NCBI GenBank assembly: GCA_001179505.1
Contig: CDMY01000468.1
Span: 1-64,000, forward strand
Length of the DNA stretch: 64,000 bases
Direction of reading: 5' to 3'
Source of the DNA: Vitrella brassicaformis CCMP3155
Taxonomy: Eukaryota; Protista; Chromerida
Within the stretch, counting starts at the first letter, position 1. Each line of letters begins with the position of its first letter. The notes under the pieces are model-generated. The model had not been told where the DNA came from, ran no database searches, and saw only the letters and a program-made list of their open reading frames with translations. Shown here one piece after another: positions 55,907-64,000 of this stretch. A program made the translations under genes and the position numbers.

Positions 55907-58882
55907 TCAATCACAATCACACCAACGTGCACGCAGCCACTCAGACGTCGTCATATCATTGGATGGGGAGGGGAGGGGAGCGGGGAAGAACCACTCCACT
56001 ACCCTCCCCAGCCCACCCCACCAGGGCCCTCTGCTGGCCGTGGTCGTGGCTGTGGCTGTGTGCTGCTGGCTCTCGGCATGTGTGTGGCCGCTGACGGGGG
56101 GCGGGACGTCCTCCGGGGCGTCTAGCTGGTCTGAGGGCGAGAGGAGGTAGCATGAGGGCGGGAAGCACGCCTTGGAGGACGTGACGGGCGCCTCCAACTG
56201 ATCAACAGGTACAGAGACATACAGCGAGAACGACTGCAGATTGTCGCGTGTCTGTCTGACGGTATGGTCGCAAGTTCTGCTGCTCACCGTTTGTGACACG
56301 TCGAGTTTGCCGAGGATGGTGTTGCTCACCTGGAGTGGGGGCTCGGCGGTGGCTGGGTCGGGCTGCGGCACCACGCCGGTGGAGCTGGCCAGGTCGGCCG
56401 GCAGGTCGTAGTCGATGTCAGGATTGACAAAGCTCGCCACCTCGATCTCATTCTGACCAGACACACACATGCACGGAACCAGTGGGATCCACTCTTGCGG
56501 CCCGTCCCGTCCACCCTCCCCCCCTCTCCCTTCTCATCCCCCCTCTCACCAGCCTGTCGCTCGCGCCCTCATGGTCTGCCGCACGGGACACCATCCCCAC
56601 GCCCATCCCCCCGGTCACCTCTCCCGGCTTCTCACTCGGCATCGTCTGCCCTATCAGCTCGGCGATGATGATCCCCAACGCACACTCGTCGAGCTCCACC
56701 CGCCGCAGCTGCAGCAGCGCGAAAATGGCAGGCGTGAAGCCCGCCAGGTCGAGGGCCAGCTCGATGTTGGGCCGCTCGCGATCGAAGAGCCGCAGCGCGT
56801 AGGCGGCCTGGCCGGCCGCCCACGGCGACGAGGGCGTGGGGCCGCCGTGGTGGCCGCTGGCGGTGCCCGGGATGGCTGCGGGGCTGGTGGTGTAGAGCTG
56901 CTCGTGCGCCTGCTGCTTGGTCATGGGATCGTAGTGGTGCGCGGCCCGCCACATGACCTGTGCGATGGAGAGTCGGATCTCTGCACGCAGCGAGGGCTGC
57001 TGGGGCAGCGGGGCCTTCTCGAGGTAGAGCCGGATGAGCGTGTGGACGAAGCAGCTGTTGATGGTGCTCTCGAATTCGACCAGCTTGCTTTCCAACAGCA
57101 GGCCCAGGATCTGGCCCAGCTTGTGCTCGATGTCCTCGTTGAGCAACGCACTCGCACCTTCGGGCGTGAAGTGCCCGATGAAGATGCTCAGCGTCGTCAG
57201 GGCCTGCCGCAGCGGGAGCGGCTCCGCGAGGGCCTCGACCGACGGCTGCACGCAGGCCGCGTACTCGGAGAGCGGCGACAGGGTCAGGTCGTGGTCGAAG
57301 TCCCTCTCAAGCGTCATGTCGAGCGTCATGTCAGGACGGCTGCCCAGCAGACGGCCGATCACACGCAACGCTGAACACAGGTGAGAGAGAGAGAGAGAGG
57401 GAGATGTGTGTGTGTGTGTGTGTGTGAGTTGGTCATATCTACCGAGTGGCAGGTGTCCGCAGAGGTCTCCAGTTCTGGCGGCGGATTCGACGTCCACGTT
57501 GGGGCAGAGCTGCCGCAGCAGCCGGACAGAGTTGGTGCGGTCCAGCTCACCCAGGTGGATGTGCCTCGGAACCAACGGACACTTCTCGGGCAAATCTGCA
57601 CACACACACACACACACACAGATGAGACGCATGCAAATGCGTGTTATCCCTGTGTCAGTAGGTTTGTCTATCTGTCTGACCGCCAGGTTTGATGATTCGT
57701 GGCGATGTGAGCAGGGTCTTGAGGTGCGGGCATGAGTCCGGCATACACCGCACACACACAGACCCTTGGGGCGCACCGTTATCGAAAACGATGAGCCTCT
57801 TGCCGCTGGCGGTTCCCGGGGTGGCTGCGATGGGACCGGCTGGTTGCGGTGGCGCCTGTTGCGTGTCGAGCATGTGCTGTGTGGGTGTGCGGAAAAGATC
57901 GGCGATGCCGCCCCCGATGTTGACGAGCGAGCGGATGGGCGTTATGCCGGACAGACAACGGAGCACCTGAGACCTGACGACATGCAGACAGACAGACAGA
58001 CAAGGAGACATCGCAGAAAGCACCACTTCACGCCACATATTTATACCAGTCGACGCACAGCCCCGTCGGGAGTAATGACAAGAGCACCTCCGAGTGGTCG
58101 GCAGCCGCCGGCAGCAACACAAACTTGTTCGACTGTCAATCAAAAGACACATACAACGCATCACATCACAATGATCACAATGAGGCCATGCCCCCTCCTC
58201 CCTCCCTCCCTCGCACACACGTGTGTGTGAGAGGTGTGTACTGCACATACCTCTTGGTGGGGCGAGGGGATCTCCGCCGAGTGTCTGACGAGCCAGTTGA
58301 TGGAGTTGCCGACCAACAACGAGTCGTAGAAGGCGTAGACGAACTTGCGGGCGGCCGTGTCAGCCACGTGCAGAGCGCCCGCATCCAAACTGACCGGCCG
58401 ATCCACACACACACACACACACGACTGCTGTCTATGTCTTGTTTCCGTCGTGTGGCGGTGGTGGTGATTACAATGATGCGGAGGCGATGGCTCGCGAGTT
58501 GCAGCTGCTGAGCACCACGCCCTGGCATGACGGGCCGCGCTGAACAAAACTCCACGGGCCCGGAGACCTGACACCCAACACACCAACACACAACACAACA
58601 CACACATGGGGCCCATTCTGACAACTCACTCTATCTCACCTGAACAGGTCGCAGAGTGAGTCGGCCTGCAGTTCGGCAGCACGTGGGTCGCCCTCGGCCA
58701 CATCCTCGTTGATCTCGGCAGCACGCGGGTCGCCCTCACACGGGGCCGTGTTGAGCCAATCCAACCAGTTGACCACCTGACAGCAGTGGTGGAGATGCAC
58801 AGATGGACGGACGGACGAATGGACGGCGCAGAGGTGTGTGTTTGTGCGTGTGTGTGAACCTGGGAGAGTGTCTCTTGTTTGC
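55907..58882 (-). CDS. Array copy D: W2 end + CHAT Cys half + NB-ARC-like STAND core + winged helix + helical/TPR-like tail (most complete copy; 5' part lost in gap)
   Basis: VVNWLDWLNTAP; GVVLSSCNSRAIASA; DTAARKFVYAFYDSLL; KRLIVFDN; CPHLKTLLTS; CGHLPLALRVIGRLL; LSIFIGHFTPEGA; FVHTLIRLYL; ALRLFDRERPNIELAL. Confidence 0.75.
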
Positions 58883-59182
58883 NNNNNNNNNNNNNNNNNN
58901 NNNNNNNNNNNNNNNNNNNNNNNNNNNNNNNNNNNNNNNNNNNNNNNNNNNNNNNNNNNNNNNNNNNNNNNNNNNNNNNNNNNNNNNNNNNNNNNNNNNN
59001 NNNNNNNNNNNNNNNNNNNNNNNNNNNNNNNNNNNNNNNNNNNNNNNNNNNNNNNNNNNNNNNNNNNNNNNNNNNNNNNNNNNNNNNNNNNNNNNNNNNN
59101 NNNNNNNNNNNNNNNNNNNNNNNNNNNNNNNNNNNNNNNNNNNNNNNNNNNNNNNNNNNNNNNNNNNNNNNNNNNNNNNNNN
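58883..59182. other. Assembly gap (300 N)
   Basis: Run of N. Confidence 1.
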
Positions 59183-59800
59183 GGGGTGATCTCGGCAGAA
59201 GGGGACTTGACGGGCGCCTCCAACTGATCAACAGGTACACAGACATACAGCGAGAACGACTGCAGATTGTCGCGTGTCTGTCTGACGGTATGGCCGCAAG
59301 TTCTGCTGCTCACCGTTTGTGACACGTCGAGTTTGCCGAGGATGCTGTTGCTCAGCTGGAATGGGTGTTCGGTGGTGGCTGGGTCGGGCTGCGGCACCGC
59401 GCCGCTCGAGCTGGCCAGGGCGGCCGGCAGGTCGTAGTCGATGTCAGGATTGACCTCGGAGAGTGGCGACAGGGTCAGGTCGTGGTCGGAGTCCCTCTCA
59501 GGCAATGCCGCCACCGATTCGGGCGGCATGTCAGGACGGCTGCCCAGCAGACGGCCAATCACACGCAACGCTGACCACAGGTGAGAGAGAGAGGGAGATG
59601 GGTGTGTGTGTGTGTGTGTGTTGGTTATATCTACCGAGTGGCAGGGTCTCCAGTTCTGGCGGCGGGCTGGACGTCCATGTTGGGGCAGAGCTGCCGCAGC
59701 AGCCGGACAGAGTTGGTGCGGTCCAGCTCACCCAGGTGGATGTGCTTCGGAACCAACGGACACTTCTCGGACAAATCTGCACACACACACACACAGATGA
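59183..59800 (-). pseudogene. Array copy C: internally deleted fragment
   Basis: HLGELDRTNSVRLLRQLCP exon, then RVIGRLLGSRPD...TLSPLSE joined directly to VNPDIDYDL of the terminal exon (junction about 59455). Confidence 0.7.
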
Positions 59801-59844: not shown

Positions 59845-62800
59845 TCACCGGTAGTCGACAGAGATGAGGAGTCCGTCCATGAAAAAGTGCTGGATGAACA
59901 CCGGCAGGGGGGACGACAGCACAGAAGCGCCACCGCCACCGCCACGGCCACCACGAGCACCCGCAGCGCTGGTAGGCAACCCGCCCCCACTCCCCGACTC
60001 CTCAGAGGCTGTCCTGCTTGGTCCCTGCTCGTCGCCGTCATCGGGCCTGGACATCGGGCCTGGACTCCTGGCCCGCAGACGCCCTCTTCTCGACCATTTG
60101 TGGCATCCTGCCGTGCTCGAGGAAGGCGGCGATGAACTCGAAGGTGTTCTGGTCGGTGGTGATGGGCAGAGGCATCACACGGACGTCCACACGGGACTCG
60201 TTGGGACCCCAGCCGCTGTCAGAGGAGGTGTTGGGACGCTCGTCAAGCACCACTGACACCATGTCCACCGACGGCCCTGTGCTGGCGCCGGGGCTGGTGG
60301 TGCTGGCGGTGCCCGGGATGGCTGCGGGGCTGGCGGTGTAGAGCTGCTCGTGCGCCTGCTGCTTGGTGATGAGATCGTAGTGGTGCGCGGCCCGCCACAT
60401 GACCTGTGCGATGTAGAGTCGGATCTCTGCACGCAGCGAGAGCTGCTGGGGCAGCGGGGCCTTCTTGAGGTAGATCCGGATGAGTGTGTGGACGAAGTAG
60501 CTGTTGATGGTGCTCTCGAACAGCTGATGATGGTGCTCGGAGTCCTCGTTGAGCAACGTACTCGCACCTTCGAGCGTCGTCAGGGCCTGCCGCAGCGGGA
60601 GCGGCTCCGCGAGGGCCTCGACCGACGGCTGCACGCAGGCCGCGGACTCGGAGAGCGGCGACAGAGTCAGGTCGTGGTCGGAGTCCCTCTCAAGCGTCAT
60701 GTCAGGACGGCTGCCCAGCAGACGGCCAATCACACGCACCGCTGAATGAACACACGTGAGACAGAGAGAGGGAGATGTGTGTGTGTGTGTGTGTGTTGGC
60801 TATATCTACCGAGTGGCAGGTGTCCGCAGAGGTCTCCAGTTCTGGCGGCGGATTCGACGTCGATGTTGGGGCAGAGCTGCCGCAGCAGCCGGACAGAGTT
60901 GGTGCGGTCCAGCTCACCCAGGTGGATGTGCTTCGGAACCAACGGACACTTCTCGGGCAAATCTGCACACACAGATGAGACGGCATGCAAAGGCGTGTTA
61001 TTCCTGTGTCAGTAGGTTTGTCTGTCCGGCTGACCGGCAGGTTTGATGATTCGTGGCGATGTGAGCAGGGTCTTGAGGTGCGGGCATGAGTCCGGCACAC
61101 ACCACACACACACAGACCCTTGGGGCGCACCGTTGTCGAAAACGATGAGCCTCTTGCCGCTGGCGGTGCCCGGGGTGGCTGCGATGGGACCGACTGGTTG
61201 CGGTGGCGCCTGTTGCGTCTCGAGCATGTGCTGTGTGGGTGTGCGGAAAAGATCGGCGATGCTGCCCCCGATGTTGACGAGCGAGCGGATGGGCGTTATG
61301 CCGGACAGACAACGGAGCACCTGAGACCTGACGACATGCAGACAGACAGACAGACAGACAGACAAGGAGACATCGCATAAAGCACCACTTGACGCCACAT
61401 ATTTATACCAGTCGACGCACAGCCCCGTCGGGAGTGATGACAAGAGCACCTCCGAGTGGTCGGCAGCCGCCGGCAGCAACACAAACTTGTTCGACTGTCA
61501 ATCAAAAGACACATACAAGGCATCACATCACCATCACAATGAGCATGCCCCCTCCTCCCTCCCTCCCTCGCACACANNNNNNNNNNNNNNNNNNNNNNNN
61601 NNNNNNNNNNNNNNNNNNNNNNNNNNNNNNNNNNNNNNNNNNNNNNNNNNNNNNNNNNNNNNNNNNNNNNNNNNNNNNNNNNNNNNNNNNNNNNNNNNNN
61701 NNNNNNNNNNNNNNNNNNNNNNNNNNNNNNNNNNNNNNNNNNNNNNNNNNNNNNNNNNNNNNNNNNNNNNNNNNNNNNNNNNNNNNNNNNNNNNNNNNNN
61801 NNNNNNNNNNNNNNNNNNNNNNNNNNNNNNNNNNNNNNNNNNNNNNNNNNNNNNNNNNNNNNNNNNNNNNNNNNNNACTGCACATACCTCTTGGTGGGGC
61901 GAGGGGATCTCCGCCGAGTGTCTGACGAGCCAGTTGATGGAGTTGCCGACCAACAACGAGTCGTAGAAGGCGTAGACGAACTTGCGGGCGGCCGTGTCAG
62001 CCACGTGCAGAGCGCCCGCATCCAAACTGACCGGCCGATCCACACACACACACACACACGACTGCTGTCTATGTCTTGTTTCCGTCGTGTGGCGGTGGTG
62101 GTGATTACAATGATGCGGAGGCGATGGCTCGCGAGTTGCAGCTGCTGAGCACCACGCCCTGGCATGACGGGCCGCGCTGAACAAAACTCCACGGGCCCGG
62201 AGACCTGACACCCAACACACCAACACACAACACAACACACACATGGGGCCCATTCTGACAACTCACTCTATCTCACCTGAACAGGTCGCAGAGTGAGTCG
62301 GCCTGCAGTTCGGCAGCACGTGGGTCGCCCTCGGCCACATCCTCGTTGATCTCGGCAGCACGCGGGTCGCCCTCACACGGGGCCGTGTTGAGCCAATCCA
62401 ACCAGTTGACCACCTGACAGCAGTGGTGGAGATGCACAGATGGACGGACGGACGAATGGACGGCGCAGAGGTGTGTGTTTGTGCGTGTGTGTGAACCTGG
62501 GAGAGTGTCTCTTGTTTGCCTGGTGTCTTGTCCTGCTCGTCCTCCCGCCACTGGACACACAGAGGGGCCCGTGAAAGCAGTCAGCCAGTGCATCCTCTCC
62601 GTGTGTGTCAGTCAGTCATGTGTGTTGGGCTACCTACCCAGGTGAAGTACTGTTCCTCGATGATGTCCTGCGTGTAGAGGGCGTCGAAGACGGCCTCGAC
62701 CAAAGCCCACAAGGGCGATATGCGGACGTGACGCAACTCTATTATGTCACACACAATGGACACACACAATGGACAGAGACACACACACATAGCGGAGAGA

Positions 62801-63198
62801 TGGACGGACGTGCACTGCATGGCTCCTGGTCACGTCAGTTTGTTACCGAGTGTGCCCTTCTGAATGGCAAACAGGAACCGTAGCTTGTGCCGGTGGATGC
62901 AAGACGTCTGAATGAACACAAGGTTGCGCGTGCACATCCATGCCATCTGTGTCTGTCCCTCCCTCCCTCCCTGACTGACTGACTGATTGACCTGGAAGAT
63001 GTTCTCGAGTGTGGGCTTGATTTTGGCGACGAGGGCACTGACCGCCTCGAGGCTCTCCAAACTCTCATCAGCCACACCAGCTGCAGTGCACCCCACCACA
63101 CATCACATCAACCAATCGCCGTATGTCGGTGTCAGTCAGAGATGCGCACCATCGATGGCTTTGAGCAGCTCCTCGGCGATGGTGGCCGACGGCAACAC
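59845..63198 (-). CDS. Array copy B: eIF4G-type W2 module + CHAT half + NB-ARC-like core + different C-terminal tail; no own start codon, crosses a gap
   Basis: Five in-frame W2 exons 63198-62276, CHAT exons 62204-61890, NB-ARC exons 61325-60350, unique tail 60300-59845. Confidence 0.65.
61577..61876. other. Assembly gap (300 N)
   Basis: Run of N. Confidence 1.
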
Positions 63199-63269
63199 CT
63201 GACGACATGCAGACAGACAGACAGAAGACAGACAAGGAGACCATCGCATAAAGCACCACTTGACGCCAC

Positions 63270-64000
63270 ATATTTATACCAGTCGACGCACAGCCCCGTC
63301 GGGAGTGATGACAAGAGCACCTCCGAGTGGTCGGCAGCCGCCGGCAGCAACACAAACTTGTTCGACTGTCAATCAAAAGACACATACAAGGCATCACATC
63401 ACCATCACAATGAGCATGCCCCCTCCTCCCTCCCTCCCTCGCACACACGTGTGTCTGAGAGGTGTGCTGTCCATACCTCTTGGTGGGGCGAGGGGATCTC
63501 CGCCGAGTGTCTGACGAGCCAGTTGATGGAGTTGCCGACCAACAACGAGTGGTAGAAGGCGTAGGCGAACTTGCGGGCGGCCGTGTCAGCCACGTGCAGA
63601 GCGCCCGCATCCAAACTGACCGGCCGATCCACACACACACACACACACACACGACTGCTGTCTATGTCTTGTTTCCGTCGTGTGGCGGTGGTGGTGATTA
63701 CAATGCGGAGGCGACGGCTCGCGAGTCGCAGCTGCTGAGCACCACGCACTGGCATGACGTGCCGCGCTGAACAAAACTCCACGGGCCCGGCGACCTGACA
63801 CCAACACACCGACACACAACACACATGAGGCCCATTCTGACAGCTCACTCTATCTCACCTGAACAGGTCGCAGAGTGAGTCGGCAGTTCGGCAGCAAGTG
63901 GGTCGCCCTCGGCCACATCCTCGTTGATCTCGGCAGCACGCGGGTCGCCCTCACACGGGGCCGTCTTGAGCCAATCCAACCAGTTGACCACCTGACAGCA
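63270..64000 (-). CDS. Array copy A: last W2 exon + CHAT exons; truncated at the junction with copy B and continues beyond the window
   Basis: VVNWLDWLKTAP; CVVLSSCDSRAVASAFLDAGALHVADTAARKFAYAFYHSLL; SNKFVLLP. A 4-nt deletion in the W2 exon relative to copies B and D shifts its phase. Confidence 0.6.

Follow-up and report, generated by a model that had tools for sequence, protein, structure and literature searches.

A W2 domain spliced to remnants of a CHAT-STAND gene in Vitrella brassicaformis: probable C-terminal module of a young deubiquitinase gene pair

The W2 domain docks translation-initiation partners in eIF4G, DAP5, eIF5 and eIF2B-epsilon. In plants, nucleotide-binding leucine-rich repeat receptors with integrated domains (NLR-IDs), such as RRS1-WRKY and RGA5/Pik-1-HMA, have an intact NB-ARC with P-loop, RNBS and MHD motifs, and the decoy is an addition to a receptor family. 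CHAT-STAND proteins of bacteria, fungi and protists combine CHAT with NB-ARC or nSTAND and with TPR or WD40. Translation-associated deubiquitinases such as USP10, OTUD3 and USP21 act on 40S proteins and, to our knowledge, use no W2 domain. One locus of Vitrella brassicaformis CCMP3155 is described here. The window that was analysed comprises the first 64 kb (64,000 nucleotides, nt) of contig CDMY01000468 (70,648 nt; assembly GCA_001179505.1), and window and contig coordinates coincide. The element in question, a W2 domain followed by CHAT-derived exons, lies on the minus strand, with fixed 300-N gaps nearby at 58883-59182 and 61577-61876. In a first-pass annotation it had been interpreted as a translation-factor domain captured by an NLR-like gene as an integrated decoy or, alternatively, as NLR debris fused to the 3' end of an eIF4G duplicate.

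Based on the evidence given below, it was concluded with a probability of roughly 0.6 that the W2 domain belongs to a young pair of deubiquitinase-W2 genes, whose transcripts read on into what is left, in spliced form, of a CHAT-STAND gene. W2 would be the native C-terminal domain of both members of the pair, an Otubain with a RING-like finger (gene model P0001) and a USP (gene model P0008), which would have in common the promoter, the first ten codons, a Pro-rich and Lys/Glu-rich linker and the eIF4G/DAP5-type W2. Past W2 the transcripts would continue into CHAT-STAND leftovers, namely the last third of CHAT, an ATG2-like scrap of 32 amino acids (aa), and a Walker-B-like stretch with a GLPL, winged-helix and helical remnant. 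It was proposed that these leftover exons would be inert as a protease or nucleoside triphosphatase (NTPase) switch and would drift neutrally, the Otubain copy being already frameshifted and the USP-type copy (B/D) still in frame. W2 itself would serve to dock the deubiquitinase on lysine-box partners in the translation initiation machinery, not as the bait of an immune receptor.

The exon chain was assembled from the minus strand by a script, and six exons with AG/GT borders were obtained between 63198 and 62277. This unit, referred to as copy B, consisted of the following parts:
63150-63198, minus strand: W2 exon 1, 49 nt, shortened, with an acceptor taken from the intron downstream of the SNKF exon
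62992-63080, minus strand: W2 exon 2, 89 nt, with an RNA joint 63080->63150
62847-62907, minus strand: W2 exon 3, 61 nt
62638-62738, minus strand: W2 exon 4, 101 nt, the W2 core
62497-62550, minus strand: W2 exon 5, 54 nt
62277-62413, minus strand: W2 exon 6, 137 nt, the W2 end and an acidic tail, with GCAG at 62306-62303 that is missing from copy A
62109-62204, minus strand: first CHAT-derived exon (CHAT-C), joined in phase to W2 exon 6 and carrying VVLSSC
61888-62026, minus strand: second CHAT-derived exon (FY) with the FYDSLL motif, followed by the 300-N gap 61577-61876

The six W2 exons together with 62204-62109 and 62026-61888 gave a stop-free frame of 242 aa that included the peptide quoted in the first-pass annotation. 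The joining in frame through GT-AG borders was thus as described there, with six exons instead of the five that had been counted. The splice of the last W2 exon to the CHAT Cys exon 62204-62109, which had been described as in phase (TTC AG/G TCT), was confirmed by the reconstructed frame and by RNA junctions, and the W2-to-CHAT adjacency reported for copies A and D was found at 63859->63794 and 58640->58567, respectively.

As judged by profile and alignment, the peptide is a genuine eIF4G/DAP5-type W2 domain, as had been recognized from its letters. The public gene model P0001 (1681 aa) was retrieved by a search with W2 exon 6 as the query, and Pfam W2 (PF02020, cut-off 30 bits) scored 75.4 bits for the two copies in it, the best stretch covering profile positions 3-74 of 79. 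The best solved relatives in the PDB sequence search were DAP5/eIF4G2 (3D3M; 5.5e-6) and eIF4G1 (1.8e-5 over query 9-160, about 150 aa); eIF2B-epsilon reached only 0.023 and eIF5 was absent among the matches. The look-alikes in a language-model atlas were eIF4G3-like W2 clusters. In single-exon searches Pfam W2 was reached by exon 4 only (17 bits, E 0.0046); the CHAT and STAND exons gave no match, and exon 4 by itself matched no PDB sequence. The models P0002-P0006 (PKD/RTX-repeat, NB-ARC/TPR and nSTAND1/TPR), also returned by the exon 6 search, were unrelated and presumably chance matches to the acidic tail of this exon. The likeness to W2 (HEAT-3) of eIF4G1/eIF4G3 and DAP5/eIF4G2 (PDB 3D3M, 3L6A, 1UG3) comprised the Pfam score, the full-length alignment to eIF4G1, the pattern ..DIIEE..F..W..E....PGK....QV..WL.WL..A with an acidic end and, in the Otubain copy, a position at or near the C-terminus of the product. 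Unlike in eIF4G and DAP5, the sequence upstream of it was not MIF4G and MA3 but the catalytic domain of an Otubain/RING or a USP enzyme, followed by a long disordered linker.

Further, the genes that carry W2 were characterized. The N-terminus of P0001 matched the Otubain family Peptidase_C65 with 55 bits on residues 1-330, with the NCFYRA and GHYD motifs present, and was followed by a Cys-rich RING-like stretch (not significant in P0001, with a weak sub-threshold RING match in one orthologue), a Pro-rich and Lys/Glu-rich linker of about 330 residues, and W2. The first-pass annotation had proposed to inspect the sequence beyond position 64000 for MIF4G/MA3 exons; the Otubain and RING-like finger were found there instead, and neither MIF4G nor MA3 was found in the Pfam scans of P0001 and P0008. 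Its alternative of debris fused behind a W2-bearing gene is close to the reading preferred here, with the host gene corrected from an eIF4G duplicate to a deubiquitinase of the Otubain/RING or USP kind.

When the W2 region was used as a query, P0008 was detected on contig CDMY01000570, a USP-linker-W2 gene (copy E) with a W2 region 95% identical. Its USP/UCH domain (PF00443) scored 139.6 bits over profile positions 2-254 of 254, with the NLGNTCY and GGHYYSY motifs present; P0008 had its first ten residues and linker in common with P0001, and the model was cut at the contig end. The Otubain/RING and USP loci were 94.5% identical over 2 kb upstream and the first 29 coding nt and 86% identical over linker-W2 (shared tracts L002:8007-10029 and contig 70648-68577, L002:12926-15151 and contig 66292-64052, both beyond the window). 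The Otubain and USP catalytic cores were unrelated, and both breakpoints of the shared tracts lay inside exons. From this arrangement it looks as if the deubiquitinase core had been exchanged as a cassette between two copies of one gene frame. Since W2 was contiguous with both deubiquitinase genes on two contigs, it was considered a common 3' module of the two genes and not an insert of a receptor. Otubain and RING orthologues in other protists (700-768 aa) had no W2, and neither deubiquitinase-W2 fusions nor CHAT/NB-ARC genes of chromerids were the subject of any paper found in a literature search.

To follow the W2-to-CHAT splice in transcripts, four sequencing runs were compared, of which X10 and X12 contained spliced RNA contigs, and X1 and X5 unspliced, genome-like contigs. 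The RNA joints examined reached from W2 exon 1 to the SNKF exon, and the spliced contigs contained the junctions W2-1/W2-2, W2-4/W2-5, W2-5/W2-6, W2-6 to CHAT-C, CHAT-C to FY and FY to SNKF. The A-type junction of W2-6 to CHAT-C (63857->63792) was present in both X10 and X12, and the B/D-type junction was present in X10 record 9 (62128-62202 and 62275-62349) with zero mismatches. W2 is truly spliced to the CHAT-derived exon in RNA. Reads across this junction, which the first-pass annotation had proposed to look for and whose absence it had named as speaking against its proposal, were found in both runs.

Upstream of W2 exon 1, the X10 contig carried three letters fitting CAG and then about 120 letters that are not on the window; this sequence fitted the deubiquitinase-linker exon (..SDWHQ) and not the SNKF exon. 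At position 62890, in W2 exon 3, the RNA contigs had the copy-A letter, and the DNA runs had both letters at about 1:1. The depths of DNA contigs with A-type and B-type letters were about 1:1 (51 and 49.6; 8.3 and 8.5). An A-like copy retaining the 4 nt was found in DNA run X1 and a recombinant form in X12; such further variants suggest that copy number and variation exceed the assembly.

In the most abundant spliced contig over W2-4/W2-5 (62551-62643; X10, X12), four letters (CATA) had no place on the window. This contig probably represents copy A, whose sequence departs from that of copy B near both exon ends; if so, the Otubain copy would be the more highly expressed one.

The exons behind W2 were then compared with the known families. 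The CHAT exons matched Pfam CHAT (PF12770, cut-off 24 bits) with a sub-threshold 15.3 bits (E 0.014) at profile positions 190-256 of 289 only, that is, the last third with the Cys side (VVLSSC present) and the C-terminal helices. The His-bearing N-terminal two thirds were absent, and CHAT-C directly followed W2 in DNA and RNA. The CHAT module of the first-pass annotation was hence reduced to a Cys-side CHAT-derived exon without the His half. Most of the atlas look-alikes of this piece, which were taken as a lead only, fell into CHAT or the caspase clan; the piece matched no PDB sequence. Next came an ATG2-like stretch of 32 aa (..VLRCLSGITPIRSLVNIGGSIADLF..; in the exons 61327-61131 and 57973-57777, minus strand), which matched ATG2_CAD profile positions 1496-1527 with an E of 2e-7 on the segment, below the cut-off, and occupied the expected place of the STAND P-loop. 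Behind the ATG2-like exon, GLPL-like and winged-helix-like motifs (..GHLPLAVRVIGRLL.., ..FVHTLIR..) and helices were recognized, a resemblance at the motif level. Atlas look-alikes of this tail were WHD_MalT, NB-ARC, nSTAND1 and TPR, with a template modelling (TM) score of about 0.7 on an ESM model whose predicted local distance difference test (pLDDT) was 0.42.

No Walker A (G....GK[ST]) was matched anywhere in P0001 or P0007, NB-ARC, NACHT and nSTAND gave no Pfam match even at E 10 and no PDB sequence match, and BLASTP of the tail against an NB-ARC/TPR protein gave a non-significant E of 0.68. Proteins of 925-2942 aa were searched with the whole CHAT/STAND part, and only P0001 and the neighbouring P0007 were found. 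The AlphaFold2 (AF2) models of the tail (2-row alignment, mean pLDDT 33) and of W2 with half-CHAT (4 rows, 34.5) were too low in confidence for use. Judging from its motif content, the part behind W2 is debris of a CHAT-STAND gene. The order CHAT, Walker-B/GLPL/WHD-like part and helical part is that of CHAT-STAND proteins, and both tail pieces had look-alikes in those families; unlike in CHAT-STAND proteins, CHAT was confined to positions 190-256 of 289 without the His half, and an ATG2-like scrap stood in the place of Walker A. Lacking both the CHAT His half and a P-loop, the remnant can be neither a protease nor an NTPase switch.

The selection acting on the parts was estimated by Nei-Gojobori counting as the ratio of non-synonymous to synonymous rates (dN/dS), with the gene models used to map the codons. 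For the linker, A versus E, dN/dS was 0.53 (bootstrap confidence interval, CI, 0.37-0.76), with fewer non-synonymous changes than expected under neutrality (p 0.003). For W2 it was 0.28 for A versus B (5 non-synonymous and 5 synonymous changes, p 0.05) and 0.14 for A versus E; for half-CHAT, A versus B, it was 2.0 (6 and 1). For the tail, C versus D, a value of 0.90 was obtained (CI 0.57-1.47; 52 and 20 among 72 substitutions). From these counts the linker and W2 look constrained, and the tail looks to be drifting neutrally, without detectable constraint. A neutral W2, with a ratio of about 1, had been named in advance by the first-pass annotation as an outcome speaking against its proposal; the ratio found was about 0.14-0.28 (10 substitutions). 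The duplicates were young, with dS of about 0.09.

A functional chimera was considered against this background, in which the half-CHAT/STAND remnant would be a working, non-enzymatic tail of USP-W2, for example a helical scaffold for oligomerisation or regulation, and its rapid evolution would reflect relaxed or diversifying selection. The frame of unit D was open throughout, the C-D indels up to about residue 1600 were multiples of three, the in-frame junction was expressed, and the tail look-alikes were WHD and TPR parts of STAND proteins, which mediate assembly. Yet the ratio of 0.90 revealed no excess of synonymous change, and in young duplicates in GC-rich DNA open frames are expected by chance, the wrong frames here remaining open for about 120 codons as well. 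The predicted models were of very low confidence (ESM pLDDT 0.42, AF2 pLDDT 33), and the Otubain copy manages without the tail. Such a chimera was therefore considered improbable, although worth more than the decoy.

The integrated decoy itself, a NLR-like CHAT/NB-ARC sensor that took an eIF4G-type W2 as bait so that an attack by a viral protease or effector triggers the receptor, was regarded as very unlikely. W2 is of the eIF4G/DAP5 type, it is spliced in frame to a CHAT-derived exon in B/D-type transcripts, it is more conserved than its surroundings, and, as at many immune loci, the array is amplified in tandem, all of which counts in favour of a decoy. Every catalytic or switch element tested is lacking, however (the CHAT His half, Walker A, an NB-ARC match), the tail ratio is 0.90, W2 is continuous with deubiquitinase genes on two contigs, and copy A is frameshifted ahead of CHAT. 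Among the proteins of 925-2942 aa no further CHAT/STAND-like ones were found, hence no receptor family with variable inserts. The capture of W2 by an NLR-like sensor was accordingly not upheld. The locus resembles NLR-IDs in having a domain of a foreign pathway in one frame with NLR-type sequence and in being tandemly duplicated; it differs from them in that its STAND part is a P-loop-less remnant without detectable constraint, in that no receptor family was found, and in that W2 belongs to the upstream deubiquitinase gene.

A slim chance was likewise given to a new kind of guard, in which an in-frame protein of USP or Otubain, linker, W2, half-CHAT and STAND remnant would use W2 as bait for a pathogen factor attacking translation initiation, the helical remnant would assemble, and the deubiquitinase would provide the output. 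If true, an alveolate alga would possess an NLR-ID-like logic that is built without an NTPase switch.

Several observations weigh against the preferred reading of a young deubiquitinase-W2 pair running into debris. The contrast of linker and W2 with half-CHAT and tail had p = 0.10 (Fisher), suggestive but not significant alone, and just 10 substitutions enter the W2 ratio. Fast-evolving immune receptors can also show dN/dS near 1. The B/D-type junction of W2 to CHAT was in frame and expressed (X10 record 9), and in copy D the path ran without a stop for more than 700 codons, so that a long chimeric protein is a possible product. The A-like copy with the 4 nt in X1 indicates that the frameshift is not universal among copies or strains.

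The deubiquitinase-W2 pair with its debris also resembles gene-pseudogene fusion transcripts, in which a constrained 5' gene is joined to unconstrained, efficiently spliced 3' exons; here, too, one copy is frameshifted and expression is kept. It differs from them in that the fused exons are open in frame in one Vitrella paralogue and that the whole arrangement was duplicated together. The likeness to USP10, OTUD3 and USP21 consists of a deubiquitinase presumed, in Vitrella by analogy, to be aimed at the translation apparatus. By analogy with other W2 proteins, W2 probably docks on translation-initiation partners here as well. What appeared to be an integrated decoy thus becomes more ordinary, a young gene fusion carrying receptor debris. 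The deubiquitinase-W2 architecture stays of interest, W2 standing behind two unrelated cores that have promoter, first exon and linker in common. Should W2 dock on initiation factors as it does in other proteins, it would direct these ubiquitin-editing enzymes to the translation apparatus, a role in which the module is not known. The locus further offers a clean case of an exon patchwork (half CHAT, an ATG2 scrap, a P-loop-less STAND) that is still spliced into mRNA.

For the reading frames, the parts of the Otubain copy, which extends past the window and is referred to as copy A, were as follows:
63859-63991, minus strand: last W2 exon, 133 nt with a 4-nt deletion; RNA joint 63857->63792 (X10, X12)
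64756-64069 of the contig, past the window end, minus strand: W2 exons 1-5
63280-63794, minus strand: CHAT-derived exons 63794-63702, 63615-63477 and 63365-63280, out of frame after the canonical junction

Copy A lacks 4 nt (GCAG) that copy B has at 62306-62303 in the last W2 exon, and the RNA contigs use the canonical donor at 63859. The deletion and this donor together put the CHAT exons of copy A out of frame; a stop, at 63070 or 61298, follows after about 120 codons. The P0001 model keeps its frame by moving the GT donor 10 nt downstream of its canonical position at two junctions, the second of them after the SNKF exon (63859/63849 and 63280/63270, minus strand); these donors were not seen in the listed RNA joints (one of the two joints is not shown there). 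The 1681-aa P0001 model is probably not a real product. The B/D-type junction of W2 to CHAT was in frame, and the D path stayed open to at least 56500.

The status of copy B was examined separately. Its part 63201-62477 was identical to the end of contig CDMY01000570, and 62519-61877 was 100% identical to 58882-58240 of copy D, introns included; the identity to copy A was only 92%, with exons of A and B differing by 2.4% and introns by 6.8%. The first W2 exon of copies A and E has 15 more nt at its upstream end, whose place in copy B is taken by the end of the intron downstream of SNKF. The left junction of copy B was free of gaps, and the only letters shared there were CAGGT, a 5-nt microhomology. 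The replacement by the SNKF intron together with CAGGT fits a clean microhomology-mediated tandem duplication of GTGTTGCC...GTCGTCAG. A microsatellite-mediated misjoin at the left edge was rejected, as the (GTCT)n runs lie away from the junction, where nothing but CAGGT is shared. Canonical splicing from the upstream SNKF exon of copy A puts the copy B W2 out of frame, and the 242-aa frame has no Met; with this frame shift and without a Met, a translation of the W2 of copy B itself is only putative.

By its sequence, the 1.56-kb unit of copy B would be either a CAGGT microhomology tandem duplicate of W2 to SNKF or the USP gene's 3' part assembled redundantly. The latter was given slightly less than an even chance: copy B would not be a separate physical copy, this 3' part, made up of the end of contig CDMY01000570 and unit D, would have been placed a second time within the Otubain gene, and the order W2-halfCHAT-W2-halfCHAT of P0001 would be an artefact. 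This is suggested by the full identity to the contig end and to D including introns, as against 92% to A, by the bordering 300-N gap, by a DNA depth of A-type and B-type letters of about 1:1 though the assembly carries the B-type twice, and by the annotators' frame, which required two unsupported +10-nt donors. A joint from SNKF to W2 exon 1, moreover, was not among the listed RNA contig joints. On the other side, a gap-free CAGGT junction is not what an assembler should invent and is expected from the tandem duplication of GTGTTGCC...GTCGTCAG, the contig depths are crude, and the recombinant variants in RNA and DNA contigs mean that the copy number may exceed the assembly. At the coordinates of copy B the assembly is unreliable and possibly redundant, and P0001 needs donors that the listed RNA contigs do not use.

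The introns were rich in (GTCT)n, (GTCC)n, (GGGA)n and (GT)n runs, for example at 63207-63225, 62471-62493 and 63420-63440. The short-read contigs of the four runs break in these repeats and yield spurious long-range joints, so the public short reads are of limited use for the array.

A 23-aa Cys-rich insert was noticed in the catalytic loop of the Otubain, between GDG and NCFYRA, which three orthologues do not have (L001:2230-2300; contig about 68420-68350). An unannotated intron could not be shown at this place, the borders not being GT-AG in frame, and by sequence the stretch may be either a real insert or a non-canonical intron.

The remaining parts of the array were as follows:
60038-61494, minus strand: unit C, with the SNKF exon (61494-61409), the ATG2-like exon (61327-61131), an exon at 60962-60810 and the GLPL/WHD-like exon (60741-60038)
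56550-58882, minus strand: unit D (gene model P0007), beginning with part of W2 exon 5 and W2 exon 6 (58776-58640)
58567-58472, 58389-58251 and 58132-58047, minus strand: CHAT exons of unit D
57973-57777, minus strand: ATG2-like exon of unit D, followed by 57595-57443 and 57370-56550
58883-59182, no strand: 300-N assembly gap, the sequence right after which has 43 identical bases in common with the end of contig CDMY01000570

The ATG2-like exon of unit C closes with a Walker-B-like LIVFDN, and the stop of P0001 lies in the GLPL/WHD-like exon 60741-60038. Between this stop and the gap, at 59880-59183 (minus strand), an extra partial unit was observed. A second exon of the LPEK type lies at 59776 and a shortened one of the GLPL type at 59570, followed by a tail that resembles the one of unit D. 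The gene model P0007 begins within this extra unit and skips the gap into W2 exon 6.

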